Source: Rebecca billardiae RCC1528
Taxonomy: Eukaryota; Protista; Haptophyta
DNA: 64,000 bases
Reading direction: 5' to 3'
NCBI GenBank assembly: GCA_965240325.2
Contig: OZ251225.1
Location: forward strand, 3,224,001-3,288,000
The position numbers and the translations under genes were made by a program. Numbering within the stretch: the first letter of the stretch is position 1; every line of letters begins with the position of its first letter. Under the pieces are notes generated by a model. That model did not search any database. It worked only from the letters and a program-made list of their open reading frames with translations, and was not told where the DNA came from. This document shows, one piece after another, positions 46,727-60,958 of this stretch.

Positions 46727-46882
46727 TACTAAAAGCAGTCACGCTGACTCACGGGTCACGCATCACGCTACTACTCTCAACTCACTCGTCAAGACTCAAC
46801 CAAGGGTGTACTCAACTCGGCCTTGTCCGTTGTATTAGAGTATGGGGGTACTGCACGTTCAATCTTAGTAGACGGTACTACG

Positions 46883-49544
46883 ATGGCAGGCGCGCCGACG
46901 ATGCTCGCCCGATGGCTCGTGGTGGCATGCCTCGCCGCGGCGTCGCTCGTCGTGGCTGAGTTCCCGCGGGTCGACGCGGCGAGTTCGGGCGCTCGCCGTC
47001 CCTTTGCCCCCGCGCAGGGCGCGCGCCGCGCGAGCCACGGCAGCGGCGGCGGCGGTTTTGGCGGCCCCGGGGGCGGCGGCGACGGGCGCGACGACGGCGG
47101 CCAGGGGCGCGGCGCGAGTGGGGTCGGGATGCGCGGTCTCGTGCGCGCGTGGCTGAGGATGACAGCCTCCTCTTCCGCCGCCGGGGCGCCCGACGGCCGC
47201 AGCTCGCCCGGCAGCGCCGACTTCTCGGGCATGAACCTGAACGACGACGACGACGCATCTGACAGCAGCGACGACGGCACGCGCGCGCGGCAGCGCCGAC
47301 GGTGGCGGCACGGCGTGGGCGCGGTGCTGGCGGCAGGCGGCGGCGCCGCGGTGCTCCGCCGCGTCGCGCCGCGCCCCGTCGTCCTCGTCCACGGCGTCCT
47401 CCAGATGGCCGACTTCATGCGCGAGGTCGCGGACTGGATCCACGAGGAGATCCCGGGCACGTACGTCAAGGCGGTCGAGGTGGGCAACGGCTACTTGGAC
47501 TCGATCACGCGCTCGATGAACTGGCAGTCGGAGGCGCTGGCGCGTGAGATCCGGTCCGACCCCAAGCTGCGCTTCGGCTTCAACCTCATCGGCTACTCGC
47601 AGGGCTCGCTGCTCGCGCGCGCGTACGTGCAGCGGCACAACAGCCCGCGCGTGTTCAACTTCCTCTCGTGGAACGGCCCGCAGGGCGGCCAGTTCGGCGT
47701 GCCGGACTACGAGCCGCTGCTCAAGCACCTCAACTGGATCACGAGCCCGATGTGGTACACCGACCCGCTGCAGGAGCGCGTCTCCTTCGCCAACTACTGG
47801 CGCGACCCCTTCCGGCTGCAGCTGTACCGCGACAAGTCGGCGTTCCTCGCCGACCTGAACAACGAGCGGCCCGCGGCGCAGCGCAACGAGACGTACCGCA
47901 GGCACCTGCTCTCGCTCGAGTCGCTGCTGCTCGTGTACTCGACGGTGGACACGATCATCATCCCGCGCGAGTCCGGCTGGTTCGCCACGTTCGCCGAGAA
48001 CTCGTCGACCGAGCTCGTGCCGCTCGAGGACCAGCCGCTGTACACCGAAGATCGCATCGGTGCGCGCGCGGCACGGCGCGCGCGCGCCGCGCGGCACGCA
48101 GCCACCGCCAGCAGTGCGCGCGCCGTTGGCGTTTGCAGCGCCGACGAGTGTGCGTCGTGCACGCCCCGCCGCAACGGCGTGCGCTGAGCCCCGTCTGCGC
48201 GCGCACACCCGTGCACGGGTGGCTGCGCTCCCGCCAGGTCTGAAGGCCCTCTCCGAGTCCAACCGACTGCACTTCGGCGTGACCAACTGCAAGCACTATG
48301 AGGCGCGCGCGCGCGCTGCGCCCTCGTCCGCGGCGCGCGCGCGCGCGATCGGGGCCGCTGAGGCTCAGCCCCCGACGGGCGCGCGGCTCGCCTCACGCCC
48401 TCGCGCGCCGCGCGTGCGCCGCGCGTGCGTGGTGACGGGCGCGCCACAGGTGGTGACGAGCGCGTGCAAGTTCCAGCTCTTCGACAAGCTCAGCCTGCCC
48501 CATCTGCTGCCGCCCTCGTCGGTGCTGCTGTCGCTGCTGCGGCGCGTGCTGCCGCGCAAGCGGCGCGGGAACGCGGCAGACGGCGGCGGCGGGCGCGGCG
48601 GCTGGTTTGGCCCCAACACGGCGTACGACGCGAAGGCTGTGGAGCGCGAGGAGCTGGAGCTGCTGCGCCGGCGCTGCGTGGCGCTCTCCTCGCAGCTGGG
48701 CCAGATGCGCGTGGGCGAGGGCGTGTCCTCCGCACGCATCGCCGCCCTCGAGGGCCAGCTCAAGGAGCTGAGCTCGCAGCTGGAGGCGGCGCGCAAGCGC
48801 GCGCGCCACCTGTCGCTCGGCGGCATCGACATGCCCGACGTGAGCGGCGGGAAGGGGCGGCGCAGCGAGGCGGAGATGCGAAGGCTTCGTGACGAGAACG
48901 ACGCGCTGCGCGCCGACAAGGCGCGGCTCGAGGCCCTCACCGCCTCGCTGCGCCGCGGCGGGCTCGACCCGGACGCGCTCAGCGCCGCCATCGACGAGCA
49001 CGAGGCTGAGCTCACGGCCGACCGGCTGCGCAACCGCACGGACGAGGCGAGGCGCGTGCGCGCCGCGCGGAGCGGCGGCGGCGGCGCGGGCGCGGAGGGC
49101 GGGTCGCGGCCAGCCGCTCGCCCACTGCTGCTTCGCCTGCTCCCGCGCTGGCCACCGTGGGCGGCGCAGGCGGCGACGCCGCCACCGCTGGGCGCTTCGG
49201 CCGGGTCCATTCTGCGGCACGCGCGCTCGAGGGCTCGAGCTGATCGGCAGAGCCGCCTGCTGGGCTTCATCCCGATCCCGTGGGCGGGCGGGCGCGCAGA
49301 TTCTCCGGGGGTCCCGCTGACTCCGCCACCGGCTCCCTCCCCGGCGTCGGGCTCGCCGACCGTCTCGCAATCACCCCCAAGCGCAGCCCCTGCTCGCGCA
49401 GGACGAAGCGACTCGCCGACGACACGCCATCAGAGCCAGGGGGGCGCCCAGCCATTTTGGGCCAGGTGGTTCGGACGCCGTCCGCGCGGCCAGTGCCAGG
49501 AGGCAGGAGTCGCAGCAGTCTCAAGGTCCACGGCCGCCACATAA
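46883..49544 (+). CDS. Palmitoyl-protein thioesterase (PPT1/2 family) with C-terminal coiled-coil extension; introns 48060-48237 and probable GC-AG 48303-48449
   Basis: PVVLVHG, GFNLIGYSQG (nucleophile), GPQGGQFGVP, ANYWRDP, DTIIIPRESGWF, EDRIG|LKAL, CKH. Confidence 0.9.
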
Positions 49545-53272: not shown

Positions 53273-53821
53273 TCAATCGGCTCCGGCCATGATTGCATAC
53301 CGTGCGCTGAGCAAGAAGAGTAGCACCGTCGGGTAGAATGTGAGTGCAAAGCCCATCGCGCGCTTAGGCGCGCCCTTGCGGTAGCCCTGAAAGAATAGGG
53401 CGCGGCCCAGCACGAACTGGACCGCACCCACAGGCAGCACACCAAGGCGCGCGCGTGGCACAACAATCGCGCCCGCACAGTGCACACCCAGCGCGAGCAC
53501 GGCTTGCTCCAGAGTATTCTGCAGCATGGCCTGCAGCAGCTTGGCCTCGGACGTCCCCGAGGTGAGTCCACTTCCGTGTATGTCCGCGGGTGTGAAGAAG
53601 CGGTGTGAGGCCAGCCTTGCGATGGCCAGAAGCAGACAGCCCACAAAGCACAGAGCTGACTGGGCGAGCAATCGGGCTCGTGCCTGGATCGAATCGCTCA
53701 GAGGGACGAGTGCGGCGGGCGACAGCACGAACGCCGCCGAAAGACCGGTCAGTGTTGTCACCATCCCGAGCGCCATGCCCTTGGCGACGCCGCGCCGCGT
53801 AGCAGCGTCGTCTTTTGACAT
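53273..53821 (-). CDS. MAPEG family membrane protein, bacterial-type
   Basis: RLASHRFFTPADIHG, LQNTLEQAVLA, FVLGRALFFQGY, RAMGFALTFYPT; about four TM segments; intronless. Confidence 0.8.
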   Translation of the reverse strand: MSKDDAATRRGVAKGMALGMVTTLTGLSAAFVLSPAALVPLSDSIQARARLLAQSALCFVGCLLLAIARLASHRFFTPADIHGSGLTSGTSEAKLLQAMLQNTLEQAVLALGVHCAGAIVVPRARLGVLPVGAVQFVLGRALFFQGYRKGAPKRAMGFALTFYPTVLLFLLSARYAIMAGAD

Positions 53822-54009: not shown

Positions 54010-57000
54010 ATGGAGGCCCCCCACGTAGTCACGGCCACCGTCGTTGCCACGTTCTCGGCCGAGGTGGTGCTGCGCCAGCTGGGGGAATGGCTGCGTGAGC
54101 TGTACGGAGGCGATGCACGCGTCGTCGCCGCCGAGTACGGCGCCGTCTTTCACGAGCTCCTCGCGCCCGCCTCGGCGTTCACGGCGACGCCCGGCGCGCA
54201 CGGGCTCAACATCATCCTCTTCCGCACAGAGGATTGGGCCAGCTCAGCCGAGGCGCGGGCGGACGCGCTCGCGCGGCTCGAGGTGGCGATGCGCGAGTAC
54301 GCGCTCTCCGCGCCCCTCCTCGTCGTGCGCTGCAAGCCCTCCCCCGCCGAGCTCCCCGAGGACAGCCTCGGCGGCGTGGACGCTCGGCTGGCGAGCGCGA
54401 GGCCATCCGGCGCAGGCACGGTCGCGTACGCGTCGTGGGCGGAGGTCGAGGCCTCGGTCGCGCCGTCAGCTGCGGCCTCCTCGTACCACACGCTCGCCGG
54501 CGAGCGCCTGGCGCGCGCGCCGTACACGGCCGCCTACTGCGAGCTGCTCGCGACCGCCATCGCGCGGCGGGTCCGAGCCGAGCTCGACAGCCGCTCGGCG
54601 CCGATCAAGCTGGTCGCCGTGGACTGCGACCACACGCTATGGGACGGGATCGTCTCGGAGGACGGCCCGGCGCACGTGCGCATCCGCGCACCGCACGCCG
54701 CGCTCGGCCGCGCCCTCGCCGCCGCCTCCGCGCGCGGCGTCCTGGTCGCCCTGCTCTCGAAGAATGACGAGCGACAGGTGAGCAGCCGGAAGCGCGCGCG
54801 CGGCGCTGCGGAGCCGCGCGCGCGCCGTCGCGAGGACAGGCGGCGCGTGTCTGCCGGCCCGACTCACGCGCGCCGCCTCCGGGCCTCATCACCCGGCGGC
54901 TCCCCGCTCGCGCACGCGCCGGCCGCTTGGGCAGGTGCTGGCGACCATCGCCACGCGCGGCGCTGAGCTTGGGCTGGCGCCTGAGCAGCTGGTCGCGTGC
55001 CGGGTCAACTGGCGGCCCAAGCCGACGAACCTCGCCGAGCTGCTCGCCGAGCTGCAGGTCTCGGCGCGGCACGCGTGCGTGATTGACGACGACCCGCTCG
55101 AGCTGCGCGCCATCGCCGACGCGCACCCGCACGCGCTCTGCCTCCGCTTCCCGCGCCGCGGCGCGCGCGGCGCAGAGGCGGCAGGGGCTGAGGGCGCGGC
55201 CGCGTGGCGCGAGGCGGAGGGGTTCGTGTACGCGCTGTGGGCGCTGGACGCGGCGCTGGCGGTGAGCGCGGAGGACGAGGCGCGGACGCAGCGCATGCGC
55301 GCCGAGGGCGCGCGCGCACGGCTGCTGCGCGCGCACGCCGCCGCCGCGCCCGCCGATGCGGCCGCGCGCGCGCCGGCAGACGCGGCGGAGGCGGCGGAGG
55401 GCGCGGAGGAGGGCGCGGCGGCGGCGGAGGGCGCGGAGGCCGACGCGTCAGCGCGCGCGGCCCGCATGCTCGAGTTCGTGCGCTCGCTCGAGCTGCAGAT
55501 CCGCATCGAGCGCGCGGCGGGCTCGGACATGGCGCGCGTCGCGCAGCTCAGCCAGCGCACCAACCAGTGCAACGCGCAGGGCGCCGCGTACACCGAGCCG
55601 GGGGCGCGCGCGGCCGCGGCACCGCACGGCCGCGGCCGGTGGGAGTGTGTGCGCGTGGCGGACAGGTTCGGTGAGTACGGGCTGGTGGGCGCGATGCTGC
55701 TGCAGCCGGGCGCGGGGCGGGCGGGCGGGGCGGGCGAGGCGGGGCGCGAGGGCGAGCCCGGGCCCAAGGGCGGCGAGGACGCCACCGGCGCCGGAGCGGC
55801 CGGTGGCGGAGGTGAGCGCGCGCTCGGCGCGCACGCGGGCGCGCTCGGCGAAGACGCGGGCGCGCTCGGCGCGGACGCGCTGCTCGTGCGCACGCTCCAC
55901 ATGTCGTGCCGCGTGCTGCACCGCGGCGTCGAGCACGCGATGCTCGCACACGCTGCGCGCAGCGCGCTCGAGCTGGGCCTGCCCCGTGTAGTCGTGCCGC
56001 TCGTGCGCACGGGCCGCAACGACCGGCTCGTCCGCTTCCTCTTGCGCGCCCACGCCGCCGTGCACGCGCCCGCGCACGCCGCCGCGCACGCGTGCGCAGA
56101 GCGCGTGCGGCCTGCGGGCCAACCCGCCGCTGTGCCACGGCACTCGGCCGTGGAGGGCGCGGCCGAGGGCGGCGTGCGCGACGCGGCGGTGGAGTACGTC
56201 GTCTTCGACGCGGCTGCTCTCGCGGAGCTCACGCTCGAATCGCTGGAGCGCTCGTGCCCCGAGCCTGAACCGGCTGCGGCGAGCAGCACCGCGGGCGAGG
56301 GCGCGCCCGGCCGAGTGCGCGCGGGCGTGCCGGCGGCCCTTGGCGGCGCCGCCGACGCCGCGGATGATCCGTCCGCGCTGCGCAACGCGCGCTTGCACCG
56401 CGTGCTGCGTCGGCTGGTGCCTGGCGAGAGGGTGGAGCCGGGAGCTCGCGCCGGCGCGCCCTCGGCGCTTGGCAGCACGCAGGACCCGACACCGTCACTC
56501 GGCGCGCCCGCGCCTGCCGCGGCGCCACTTCAGCTGGAGGCTCGATGGCTGGCGGTGCTCAGCGAGATCGCGCGCTCGAGCTTTGCGCCGCCGCCGACGG
56601 ACGGCGGGCGCTCCGCCCCGTGGCACCCGCCCGCGGACGTGCCCATCCTCAGCCTCGGCGTCGACTCGATGGAGGCGCTCGTCCTGGTCGAAGCGGCAGC
56701 GCGCGCCGCTCGCGCAGAGGACAGTGAGAGTGCGGCCGCGCGCGAGTTGGCCTCTTCGCTGCACGACGGCACGACACTTCGGGAGCTCGCGCGCACGCTG
56801 GCGAGGATCGCGCCGCCGCCGTCGTCATCGCCGGCGGCGACCGAGGCGGCGGCTCGCGCAGATGCCGCCGCGGCCGATGCTGGCCCGGCCGCCCGTGGCG
56901 GGGCGCCGAGCGCGCGGGAGCCGCCGTGCGCACGCCGCGGCGGTGTCGGCGGCGGCGGCGGCGGCGACGACGGCGGCGGCGATGGCGACGGCGACGGCGC

Positions 57001-58447
57001 GTCGGCTGGCGCGGCCGCGAGTGCGTACGCGCACACGCCCGCGCAGCCCAAGATGCCGGCGGAGATCCTCGAGCGCGATGGACGCACGCCCGGCGCGGCG
57101 CTCACGCGCGTGGGCGGGCTCGAGGCGTGCTGCGCGGGCGACCTCGAGCGCGCGCGCGCGCTCGCCCGCGAGCGCGGCTGGGTGGCGGCGCACGCGTGCG
57201 ACCGGCAGGGCACAACCGCGCTGATGTGGGCAGCCGGGTACGGCCGGCTGCCTGTCGTGCGCTGGCTGCTCGAGGAGGTGGGCGCGGCCGTCGACGCGGC
57301 GAACAAGGACGGACGGACCGCGCTCATGTGGGCGTGCAAGAACGGCCAGCTCGACGTGGTCGACCACCTGCTCAACAGCGCGCGCGCCGACCCGACGCTG
57401 CGCATGAAAAAGGGTGGCTCCTCCGCCTTCGACTGGGCGGTGGCGGGCGGCAGCATCCCCGTGGTCGAGCTGCTCGCCGCGCACCCCGGCGTGGACATCC
57501 ACGCGACCAACCTCACGGGCTGCGCGCCCGTGCACTGGGCGGCCGCCGCCGGCCACCAGCACGTGTGCGAATGGCTGCTCGCGCGCGGCGCCGACTTTGG
57601 CGCTGTGAACGACTGGCGGCACGGCGCGGTCGTGAAGGCGGCGTGGCGGGGCCACTGCGAGCTGCTGCGCTGGCTGGTCGACCCGGACGCGGGCGGGCCG
57701 TGGCGCGAGTGCGCGGGGCAGCTCGAGCTGCCCGACCACGAGGGCACCACGCCCGCAAACCTCGCGCGCGCGGCGGGCCAGCAGGCCACAGCGGCAGTCC
57801 TCGATCGAATTGCTGCGGCGGCGGCAGCCGCGGCGGCGGCGGCGCGCGGCGGGAGCGGCGAGGCTGCTCCGAGCGCGGACGCCGTCGCCGGCGCACCGCC
57901 GGCGCCCTCCTCCGCCCCCGCGCCCCCCGCCGCCCGCCCGCGATACGTGCCCAAGTCGGACCGCGCCGAGTGGCTCGGCCTCAAGCTCGAGCACGCGCTC
58001 CTGCGCATGGCCTTCCACGGCGTCGGCGCCGAGTGGTCGCGACTCTGGGAGCCCGCGCTGCAGGCGAATCGCTCGCGGCCGCTCACGGAGGATGAGCGGC
58101 GGTGGCGCCGTCGCATCCTCAAGCGCCGCGCCGCGGTGAGCAGCCGGTACCAGTCGGAGGTGCTCAACAAGATGCGGCACGACGAGAAGGCCAAGCTACT
58201 CGCTGAGCTCAAGCGCGCGCTGGCGGAGGGCGCGCTGACAGACGCACACCAGCGGCTGGTCGCCGAGCGTGGCGTGGCGGCCTTTGAGCACGAGCTGCGC
58301 GAGGCCGCTACTGCCGACGCTGCCGGGAGCCCAGAGGCCGGCGCCACCGCAGTCCTCCGGGATGAGACTCCGAGGGCAGAGCCGCACGTACACCGGGTGC
58401 TCGCCGAGACGACGGCAAACGGTGGCGGGCCCGCAGCAAATCGGTGA
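54010..58447 (+). CDS. FkbH-like HAD-IIIC glyceryl transferase/phosphatase + acyl-carrier (PP-binding) domain + ankyrin repeats; intron 54778-54934
   Basis: VVATFSAE, KLVAVDCDHTLWDGIVSEDG (DxDxT), LSKND, VNWRPK, IDDDPLE, QLSQRTNQ, DRFGEYGLVG, MSCRVLHRGVE; ACP motif LSLGVDSMEAL; ankyrins GTTALMWAAGYG, GRTALMWACKNG, GCAPVHWAAAAG. Confidence 0.88.
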
Positions 58448-59163
58448 CGACGTCGCAGTGAGTCAGTGACGACTTCGTCGTCCCCGCGCTGACCAGTGAC
58501 CTGATTCGTGTCGTCCTTCATCGACCTTCGTCAATTCGACTGATTGTCAATTGTCGTCCTCGGCCCTCGAACCTTCACGACGACGACGGGCCGTTGAAGC
58601 CCCGAAGCCAGCGCAGCCGAGCGGCGGGGCGAGCTGCGCCAGCGGCCGAGGGGTGACCGCCGAGCCGCAGCAGTCGTGATGAGTCGATTCAGCGATATTC
58701 TGCTCGACTGCTCCCGCGAAGACGGCGGGCCGAAGTGCTCGTCATCATCCTAATATATATATATATATATATGTGGCGTTATAGGGGACGCCTTGTACGA
58801 GCCGGGCATGGCCGCATCATGGCGGAGTGGCTAGACATATATAATATATATATACCGCCGTCCAGATGAGTCACAGCAGTATCATGATGATACGTAGTAT
58901 GATGTGTTCACACAGAGACACGCAAGAACATGTCTGTACATCGGCAGGACAGGATGCAACGTCATGCGGTCATGCCTTGTGCTTGGAATCGTGTCGCGGA
59001 CGCACGAGTCAGACTCAGTGCGGATGACACCAGTGCTCGTCTGTCCACGGGCCGGGGGGTGCGCCGCGGCAGCCCCACAGCACCTGGCCGCCACCGTGCG
59101 TCATCGGCGCGACAAGGGCGTCCGTCCGATGCGGCCGTCGACCCGCCCGACGTGACGAGCCGC

Positions 59164-60597
59164 TTACTCGACAATGGCCGACTCTCCGCGCTCCGAGAGC
59201 TCCGCTGCGGTCGGCATGTCCGCAGCGACGAGCTGCTGCAGCTCCTCCGGCGACACGTTGCCGTCCGAGCTCGGGTCGAGCTTCTCGATGAAGAGGCGGT
59301 TCGCCTGGCGCATGCGCGCGCGGTCGATGGCGTTACGCACAGTGCGCGCGTTCGAGAAGAACGGCAGCTCCATGCGCTTGGTGATGTAGTCCTTGAGCAC
59401 CGGGATCGCGTCGTCCGCGAACGAGTACTCGAGCTCGCGCGCCATCACCTTGGCAATGTCGACGAGCTCCTCCGGCTCGTAGTTGGGGAAGTCGATGTGG
59501 TTGCCGATGCGCGAGGACATGCCCGGGATGTACGAGAAGAACTTGTCCATGCGGTCCTTGTACCCGGCGAGCGTGACGATCAGGTCGTCCTTCTGGTTCT
59601 CCATCACGTTGAGCAGGATCTCGATCGACTCCTGGCCGTAGTCCTTGTCGTTGGCCGCGTTGTACAGGTAGTACGCCTCGTCAATCAGCAGGATGCCGCC
59701 GAAGGCCTTCTTGATCATCTCCTTCGTCTTCGGCGCGGTGTGGCCGACGTACTGGCCGACAAGGTCGTCGCGCGTCGCGACGACCACGCCGCCGTGGCGG
59801 CAGTAGCCCATGCGCTGCAGGATCTGGCCCATGCGCATCGCGACGGTCGTCTTGCCCGTGCCGGGCGCACCCGTGAAGCACATGTGCAGCGAGGGGATCG
59901 AGGTGTCGAGGCCGAGCTTGCGGCGCATCTTGTCGATCACCAGCAGCGACGCGATGTCGCGCACGCGCTGCTTCACCGGGACGAGGCCGATCATGTCGTT
60001 GTCCAGCTCCTCCAGCACCTCGACCACGCCGTCGCGGTACATGAAGTCCTCGACCTGGACAGAGGGACAGGCGGGGCGCGCGGGGCCGGGGCCGGGGGGC
60101 GCGCGTGAGCGGGTGGGTCGGCGAGGGGAGTGCCGAGCCAGACGCGGCGACTTCGAGCATGCTCGCGCACCACCCTCGCGTGCGCGCGCGCGCGCTCTCT
60201 GCCACGCGCGCGCGCGCGCGCGCGGGTAGCTGCGGGCGCGCGTCCGGACCTTGCCCGCGGGCGTGTCGTCAGGGATCGCGTTCATCGCCGCGATCTTCTT
60301 CTGGCGGCGCATGCGCTTCTCCTCCTCGGCCTTGAGCGCGGCCATCGCCTCCTCCTCCTCCTTCCGGCGCTCGACATCCGCCTCCTTGAGCGCGTCCGAC
60401 AGCTTGCGGTAGTTACCCGCGTTCGGGTCGCCCGCCATCGCCTTGTCCTCATCGAACTGCAGACCACCGCCGCCCGAGGACATCGTCACGGCGACGCGCG
60501 AGGGCGCGACACGCGACTTCACCGGCGCCATCGGGCCGGTGTGCATGGCCTCGGCGCCGAGGAGCAGGCAGGCCGCGAGCGGGAGCGTGCGCCACAT
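59164..60597 (-). CDS. cbbX: Nuclear-encoded CbbX (red-type Rubisco activase, AAA+) with bipartite plastid leader; in-frame intron 60055-60249
   Basis: [83 protein letters not shown]. Confidence 0.96.
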
Positions 60598-60958
60598 CGT
60601 GTTGATTGCTTGTCGGACGTCGCTCGCTCCTCGCCGCGACGAGCGCGCCGAAAGACGCAATCTCGGCCGCGAACAGCGATGAAGCTCGCGCAACCAGATT
60701 GTGGCAATTGATGCGGCGTGGGTATTTGCGGCTGGCAACGCGGCCAACAGCGTCCGGTCGCAAGTCGCCGTGAGTCCGCGTCTGGCGTCTGGAAGATGCG
60801 ATCATGCCACCGGAGTTTCGTCGGTCACCGCAAACACGGCGGTTTTTCGTGAAAATAAAAGGCGCCGAAAACTCGAGCCGGACTGTCTCACGTCCGGGCC
60901 GTGCACCGGGCACCAGCCGACGCAGCACGGCGCCGTATCGCTGCCGGCTGCGTAGCAC

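Follow-up and report, generated by a model that had tools for sequence, protein, structure and literature searches.

What does an FkbH-type loading enzyme, familiar from bacteria, do in a haptophyte when it is joined to ankyrin repeats instead of to a domain that would consume its product? The question is raised by a gene in a 64-kb stretch of the Rebecca billardiae RCC1528 assembly (GCA_965240325.2, contig OZ251225.1, positions 3,224,001 to 3,288,000), hereafter the window, in which an earlier note, made from the letters alone, had read a stand-alone eukaryotic fusion of FkbH, carrier and ankyrin parts. By FkbH chemistry, an intermediate of glycolysis is drawn off into natural products. The domain order, the motifs and the relatives of the gene bear this reading out, and place it in a conserved eukaryotic FkbH family with an unusual output end. 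By analogy with the bacterial enzymes, we lean towards the view that the protein would act as a cytosolic stand-alone loading module, making a glyceryl-S-carrier from 1,3-bisphosphoglycerate and passing the glyceryl unit on to a partner that the ankyrin domain binds.

The fusion is found well beyond this locus. A search with the ankyrin half retrieved about ten clusters of proteins of 1020-1110 residues, 52-59% identical over that half, which carry the FkbH, carrier and ankyrin parts in the same order as the window protein, and a profile search added more. Among them are CAK0838293.1, from the genome of Prorocentrum cordatum, and an open reading frame (ORF) that is complete in the Polykrikos kofoidii transcriptome (EukProt). 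Genomic contigs from metagenomes contain three of the relatives, two of which (P0007 and P0010) are single unbroken ORFs with eukaryotic housekeeping genes as neighbours (eIF2B-epsilon, a ubiquitin-like E1 and protein kinases). Further relatives are on transcript-sized contigs, which the ORF fills. Judged from these comparisons, the FkbH-carrier-ankyrin architecture is a conserved single gene in several lineages. The proposal that it is undescribed holds as far as the literature is concerned, since our search returned no paper on an FkbH-ankyrin fusion and none on FkbH in dinoflagellates or microalgae, the FkbH papers found being all bacterial. It does not hold in the sense of a one-off, as the gene is a divergent member of a family present in dinoflagellates and other marine eukaryotes, some members of which are already machine-named 'FkbH-like protein' in Joint Genome Institute (JGI) data. 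In the third of the relatives on genomic metagenome contigs, P0018 (L001:10001-13569), the rest of the ankyrin part was called as another gene, of 166 residues, that starts at the end of the first one, which is probably due to a frameshift or an unrecognised intron in the contig.

At the window locus, the spliceosomal intron that had been proposed joins two frames and restores colinearity with the relatives. Without splicing, the exon-1 ORF runs into a stop at 54966, and the FkbH continuation lies in a separate frame (54935-58447). The spliced junction, LLSKNDERQ/VLATIATRG, is a gap-free match to the family pattern SKNxExDVW and is colinear with all relatives, and exon 1 from residue 11 onwards aligns with residues 29-274 of a bacterial FkbH-acyl carrier protein (ACP)-thioesterase (TE) protein, P0002 (E=5e-27), as well as with all the algal relatives. 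The guanine plus cytosine (GC) content at the three codon positions is coding-like in exon 1 (GC1/2/3 of 76/55/92) and amounts to ~80/55/90-100 over most of exon 2; the intron shows no codon periodicity (81/81/85), and the 188 bp upstream of the gene are likewise flat. Bacterial contamination was ruled out by the intron, by a GC3 like that of the neighbouring genes and by the eukaryotic flanking genes.

The GC content of the window ranges from 62 to 82% and is ~78% across the FkbH gene, and long ORFs are frequent on both strands, so that an open frame by itself is weak evidence. The FkbH-ACP part and the ankyrin part, with or without the C-terminal tail, might thus be separate genes or transcripts, seemingly joined because stops are rare in DNA of 78% GC. 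Spurious long ORFs are indeed common, including two of 529 and 663 codons antisense to the gene; codon periodicity is weak in the linker (residues 631-675) and over residues 946-990; and the tail is absent from the relatives. We nevertheless hold such a separation to be very improbable, as the order and the position of the linker are kept by relatives of several lineages, in single ORFs as well as on transcript-like contigs; moreover, the ankyrin part lacks a start codon context of its own, and behind the linker comes the conserved ILERD lead-in, precisely as in the relatives. From this comparison, we have high confidence that the fusion is real in R. billardiae. For the tail, the assignment is less firm. 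It has no internal stop and is coding-like in frame over residues 991-1125 (GC3 84-98%, GC2 42-60%); it had no match in Pfam and gave no lead in an ESM Atlas look-up, which yielded nothing of use for the main protein either. We consider it rather likely to belong to the protein, the contrary view, that it lies outside, having a somewhat smaller probability. The two antisense ORFs, at 54889-56478 (-) and 56530-58521 (-), are composition artefacts of the 78% GC DNA.

According to its profiles and motifs, the first part of the protein is an FkbH-type unit composed of an SGNH-like N-domain, a HAD-IIIC phosphatase and a Cys domain. The DxDxT motif, the cysteine of MSCRV, the GVDS motif and the ankyrin repeats to which the earlier note had drawn attention were all recovered by translation and with family profiles (6-7 repeats), the three motifs being found as VDCDHTLW (54619-54642), MSCRVLH (55901-55921) and LGVDSMEAL (56654-56680). 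The set of catalytic motifs is complete (DCDHT, SKN, K, DDDP and MSCRV). Exon 1 matches NCBIfam TIGR01681 (HAD-IIIC) and, at 47.6 bits, positions 3-63 of TIGR01686 (FkbH domain), to which exon 2 contributes 95.8 bits in three stretches; the exons were scored separately, and the curated cutoff of TIGR01686, 146.65 bits, is for a whole protein. The orthologues, with 152-214 bits, score above it. When compared with 67 FkbH domains, the window protein retains 53 of the 67 columns that are conserved at >=85%, and all but one of the aligned columns that are conserved at 100%. The invariant columns retained comprise D205/D207/T209 (DCDHT), S250/N252, K29 and D51/D52 (exon-2 ORF numbering), RTNQ, DRxGxYG and S324/C325/R326 (MSCRV).

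The structural comparison was made with a confident model of the full-length P. cordatum orthologue P0004 (predicted local distance difference test score, pLDDT, 86; predicted template modelling score, pTM, 0.69). In a structural search, residues 1-350 of this model match PDB 3slr, the N-terminal part of BF1531 from Bacteroides fragilis (Z=30.1, 340 residues aligned, 18% identity). This was the only solved structure found that spans the N-domain and HAD of the family; it differs from the window protein in being a structural-genomics fragment without Cys domain, carrier, ankyrin or assigned function. The first ~190 residues of the model resemble GDSL/SGNH esterases (7e16, Z=13.4) and its HAD core resembles MDP-1 (1u7o, Z=16.2). 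A PDB sequence search with the FkbH part of the window protein gave no match, and one with a full-length profile gave ankyrin proteins only. The window protein begins at once with the conserved N-terminal domain, and so do its relatives (MEAPHVVTATVVATFSAE in the window, MHVVAVAGTFSCDP and similar in the relatives), so that no room is seen for a signal or transit peptide, and we take it to be cytosolic.

The carrier lies at residues ~531-627 of the exon-2 ORF. Its assignment is based on the alignment with orthologues that pass the Pfam PF00550 (PP-binding) gathering threshold of 20.8 bits, on profile matches to solved carriers and on a predicted four-helix fold. The aligned carriers of P0004, P0054 and of two proteins with a different loading domain, P0011 and P0047, pass with 27.6, 26.8, 46 and 31 bits, and that of P0007 is just under the threshold (20.3 bits). 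The profile of the family carrier region matches the solved carrier domains of the nonribosomal peptide synthetases (NRPS) PvdL (1.7e-6), LgrA, GrsA and TycC (E=1.7e-6 to 1e-3) and aligns the GGDS motif with solved peptidyl carrier protein (PCP) domains; the window carrier has in common with its relatives the Ser, the Gly and the preceding DVP. The earlier suggestion that the GVDS region folds as an ACP agrees with the AlphaFold2 (AF2) model of this region, which predicts four helices (7-25, 54-67, 74-84 and 91-101), the second of them opening with Ser54 (pLDDT 55-82). The ankyrin domain is recognised by the Pfam Ank families (including PF12796/PF00023) at E=1e-16 to 8e-29, the best being Ank_2 (E=8e-29, 100.4 bits for a cutoff of 27.3, residues 731-920 of the exon-2 ORF). 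Its AlphaFold model consists of 6-7 helix pairs (pLDDT >90) and matches ordinary solved ankyrin domains with Foldseek (E=1e-12), among them the substrate-recruiting ankyrin domain of the palmitoyltransferase HIP14/zDHHC17.

How might such a protein work? The bacterial glyceryl-S-ACP synthases (FkbH of FK520, OzmB, and tetronate enzymes such as Mad7/Mad14 with their ACPs), in which the acceptor is a carrier protein, have in common with it the HAD-IIIC motifs, RTNQFN, DRFGxYGLVG and the Cys of SCRVLGRGxE, and their expected substrate is 1,3-bisphosphoglycerate (PMC7489565). Unlike these enzymes, the window gene is eukaryotic, has an intron, carries its carrier fused in cis, lies in no biosynthetic gene cluster and ends in ankyrin repeats. 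Its closest sequence relatives outside the eukaryotic family are bacterial FkbH-ACP units, used for loading or extension in NRPS/PKS lines, that lead into condensation (C), ketosynthase (KS), TE or R domains (for example P0061, P0065, P0104 and P0181), which also have the SGNH-like N-domain and the fused carrier and are 33-39% identical; for the nearest ones, with C, TE, R, KS or DH-FkbM downstream, the identity is ~37-39%. In the window protein, an ankyrin domain without catalytic function stands in place of the catalytic domain that would consume the unit, and the hand-over must consequently be in trans. Proteins made only of FkbH, ACP and TE, of ~1000 residues, are frequent among the bacterial relatives (P0002, P0065, P0183, P0188); we know of no described product for this layout.

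Following the FkbH family, the steps could be as follows: (i) a phosphopantetheinyl transferase would prime Ser578 of the carrier, (ii) the FkbH unit would take glycolytic 1,3-bisphosphoglycerate, with acylation of the conserved Cys of MSCRV, (iii) the HAD aspartates of DCDHT would strip the 3-phosphate and the glyceryl would move in cis to the carrier arm, giving a glyceryl-S-carrier, and (iv) the C-terminal ankyrin domain would bind a separate partner (ketosynthase, condensation enzyme or acyltransferase) that takes the glyceryl unit. A Cys-bound phosphoglyceryl intermediate has reportedly been seen with OzmB. As the residues are in place and the carrier is in cis, a glyceryl-S-carrier would be the likeliest product. 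Since no KS, C, TE or R domain is present in the protein itself, the unit would have to pass to another protein in trans, with the ankyrin domain as the obvious candidate for the docking element; docking of a partner was also the role put forward earlier, and it seems to us the most reasonable one, being in line with the repeat fusions of dinoflagellates (PMC6361889, PMC8283056). The acceptor that we favour is a KS or C enzyme, over a protein or lipid target.

Several observations weigh against this picture of an active glyceryl-loading module. FkbH-family members can yield products other than glyceryl, so the glyceryl unit is not certain. The single-gene structure at the window locus rests on comparison with relatives. 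No PKS (polyketide synthase), NRPS or partner gene was found nearby, either among the long ORFs scanned in the window or next to those loci of the relatives that we saw. An exhaustive HMMER search with the FkbH-carrier part of the window protein gave 4,942 matches at E <1e-3, none at E <1e-30, the best having 115 bits; with so low a best score, the window protein is without a close relative in the searched library (its own sequence is not among the entries). The FkbH and carrier halves are strongly divergent from the algal clade, the carrier itself scores below the Pfam PP-binding threshold (12.8 bits, E=0.14), the enzyme is interrupted by three low-complexity inserts, and the sole loss among the aligned 100%-conserved columns is that of the Phe of NQFN, which has become Cys (RTNQCN).

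The divergence is highly uneven. In the ankyrin domain, which is the best conserved part of the protein and has many invariant residues, the window protein is 55-58% identical to the algal group, for 60-63% within the group (bacterial modules are not comparable there); in the FkbH domain the values are 28-36% and 43-57%, with 33-38% to the bacterial modules, and in the carrier 23-36% and 38-52%, with 22-24% to the bacterial modules. The catalytic half (54935-56134) is thus far more diverged than the ankyrin half. This asymmetry, the long branches in the trees, the change of NQFN to NQCN, the sub-threshold carrier and the low-complexity inserts would suit decay or re-purposing of the enzyme half, with the ankyrin domain as the selected part and the FkbH-carrier part inactive, a phosphatase only or active on another acyl phosphate. 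We regard this as improbable, given that no loss is seen in any of the four HAD motifs, in the Cys motif or at the carrier Ser, that most of the highly conserved columns are kept, that ~1,420 codons are open with a GC3 of ~90% throughout, and that the inserts sit in loops that are also variable in relatives such as P0005.

The phylogeny allows, but does not impose, a single origin of the fusion. In a tree of the FkbH domain, the 14 ankyrin-bearing rows (the algal FkbH-carrier-ankyrin proteins labelled P0003-P0010, P0054, P0055 and others) form a clade with a support of 99 in the Shimodaira-Hasegawa-like approximate likelihood ratio test (SH-aLRT). After this group, the next-best matches are bacterial proteins in which FkbH, with the N-domain, and a carrier are followed by C, TE, R, KS or DH-FkbM. 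In a free quick tree of the FkbH domain, the window row falls outside the ankyrin-bearing clade on a branch of length 1.86. When the window protein and the clade were constrained to join, the likelihood was higher (+8.1) and the approximately unbiased (AU) test gave p-AU 0.68, so that a single origin is not rejected; a tree of the ankyrin domains gives no resolution. Since the AU test does not reject one origin and the carrier keeps the DVP..LGxDS of the cassette type, we prefer to see the window gene as a fast-evolving orthologue and not as a second independent fusion.

The carrier-ankyrin half is not restricted to FkbH proteins. In three algal proteins (P0008, P0011 and P0047) it follows an AMP-forming adenylating domain (A-domain; AMP-binding at 130-144 bits, the best NCBIfam match being to FadD-type ligases), so that the cassette is the same as in the window but the loader is not FkbH. 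The carrier-ankyrin region of these proteins is 43-44% identical to that of the window protein, and shows DDVPF..GGDS, the ILERDxRxP lead-in and the same invariant ankyrin residues. That the same half stands behind FkbH or an A-domain points to a unit that accepts different loading enzymes, and different starter acids probably have the ankyrin part in common as their device for delivery or docking. P0047 (AMP-binding, carrier, ankyrin; 1251 residues) takes up the whole of two contigs of transcript size, each from another sample (L006:35-3790 and L007:34-3789), and is therefore expressed as one mRNA somewhere. One might speculate further, and only tentatively, that carrier-ankyrin is a portable, eukaryote-specific delivery device, whose carrier would be charged either by FkbH, with a unit derived from 1,3-bisphosphoglycerate, or by an adenylating domain, with a free acid, and whose ankyrin domain would dock on a common acceptor. 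The A-domain sister family suggests a general rule more than a one-off.

The same cassette could also serve another purpose, the modification of proteins or lipids. The ankyrin domain would then capture its target, a protein or a membrane enzyme, onto which the tethered glyceryl (in the sister family, acyl) would be moved, no assembly line being fed. No PKS or NRPS gene is linked to it at any of the loci seen, conservation is highest in the ankyrin domain, in which many residues of surface type are invariant, the structural matches of this domain include substrate-recruiting ankyrins such as that of HIP14/zDHHC17, and one cassette is common to two different loading enzymes. The protein has, however, no transferase domain for the last step, the close non-ankyrin relatives of its FkbH half all sit in NRPS or PKS lines, and eukaryotic genes are seldom clustered, so that the missing linkage tells us little. 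On balance we find such a role unlikely, if less so than decay of the enzyme half; with a protein or lipid as the acceptor, we would be dealing with a carrier-dependent modification system of a new kind.

Delivery to a KS or C enzyme, the outcome that we favour, would fit what is known of dinoflagellates, in which separate genes encode the PKS parts, which then have to come together (PMC6361889, PMC8283056). Single PKS or NRPS domains are there often fused to ankyrin, HEAT or TPR repeats, which are possible scaffolds for the separate parts (PMC6361889, PMC8283056). As in the window protein, these trans-acting proteins (FabD-like AT-ankyrin, thiolation-TPR, HEAT/PPR fusions) combine one function with an interaction repeat; the papers that describe them (PMC6361889, PMC8283056) make no mention of FkbH. 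Algal polyethers such as okadaic acid and the amphidinols start with a non-acetate, glycolate-type unit whose loading enzyme has not been identified (PMC5484107). In the amphidinols, labelled free glycolate ends up as the starter (PMC5484107), which an adenylating loader would suit at least as well as FkbH, and the link to this starter is therefore speculative. If the view of a portable cassette is true, the polyketide machinery of dinoflagellates and haptophytes, dispersed over single-domain proteins, would have in this cassette its missing starter-unit loader. For starter loading, a carrier that loads itself and bears a docking domain is a concrete and clonable candidate, with a simple assay, a mass shift on the carrier arm. 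The coordinates of its parts are given in Table 1.

Table 1. Features of the FkbH-carrier-ankyrin gene of Rebecca billardiae, in window coordinates.
Feature	Position	Strand	Description
Whole gene	54010-58447	+	Two exons and one intron
Exon 1	54010..54777	+	ATG at 54010; SGNH-like N-terminal domain; first half of HAD-IIIC phosphatase (motif I DCDHT 54622-54636, motif II SKN)
Spliceosomal intron	54778..54934	+	157 nt, GT-AG, phase 0, CAG/GTGAGC ... GGGCAG/GTG
Exon 2	54935..58447	+	Rest of gene; frame differs from that of exon 1
Exon 2, part 1	54935..56134	+	Second half of HAD (Lys, DDDP); RTNQ; DRFGEYGLVG; Cys domain with MSCRVLHRGVEH (Cys codon 55907-55909); three low-complexity inserts
Carrier (ACP/PCP) domain	56525..56815	+	Phosphopantetheine Ser of LGVDS at 56666-56668
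Disordered Ala/Gly/Asp-rich linker	56816..57058	+	pLDDT <50; relatives have a linker of variable length in the same place
Ankyrin domain	57059..57826	+	ILERDGRTP lead-in, then 6-7 repeats
C-terminal tail	57827..58447	+	~200 residues and stop codon; no counterpart in relatives

The remainder of the window offers little to connect with the gene. No PKS, in agreement with the earlier note, and no NRPS was found among the long ORFs scanned elsewhere in the 64 kb, and KS, C, TE or R domains are absent from the gene itself, from these ORFs and from the neighbourhood of the relatives. The long ORFs encode sulfotransferases, a PAP-fibrillin, an ABC/MlaE protein, an M16 peptidase, a fucokinase-like protein, a palmitoyl-protein thioesterase, a MAPEG-family protein, a CbbX-like AAA+ ATPase and a cyclic-nucleotide-gated channel. 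The palmitoyl-protein thioesterase gene (46823-48187, +; PF02089, E=2e-66) lies ~6 kb upstream of the FkbH gene and is probably unrelated to it. The gene for the MAPEG-family membrane protein (53273-53821, -; PF01124, E=5e-8) is head to head with the FkbH gene, and, the two start codons being only 188 bp apart, both genes may share a bidirectional promoter. The adjacent CbbX-like gene had been taken as a possible hint of a Calvin-cycle connection. We reject a functional link to cbbX or to the plastid because of the lack of a targeting extension on the FkbH protein and because of the different neighbours of its relatives (eIF2B-epsilon, an E1-like enzyme, kinases), among which cbbX is not conserved; its presence here is coincidental. 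Within the CbbX-like ORF itself (59164-60747, -), an Arg/Ala/Pro-rich stretch at ~60040-60250 lies between a plausible AAG/GTG donor and a CAG/ acceptor, and looks like an in-frame unspliced intron and not like protein.

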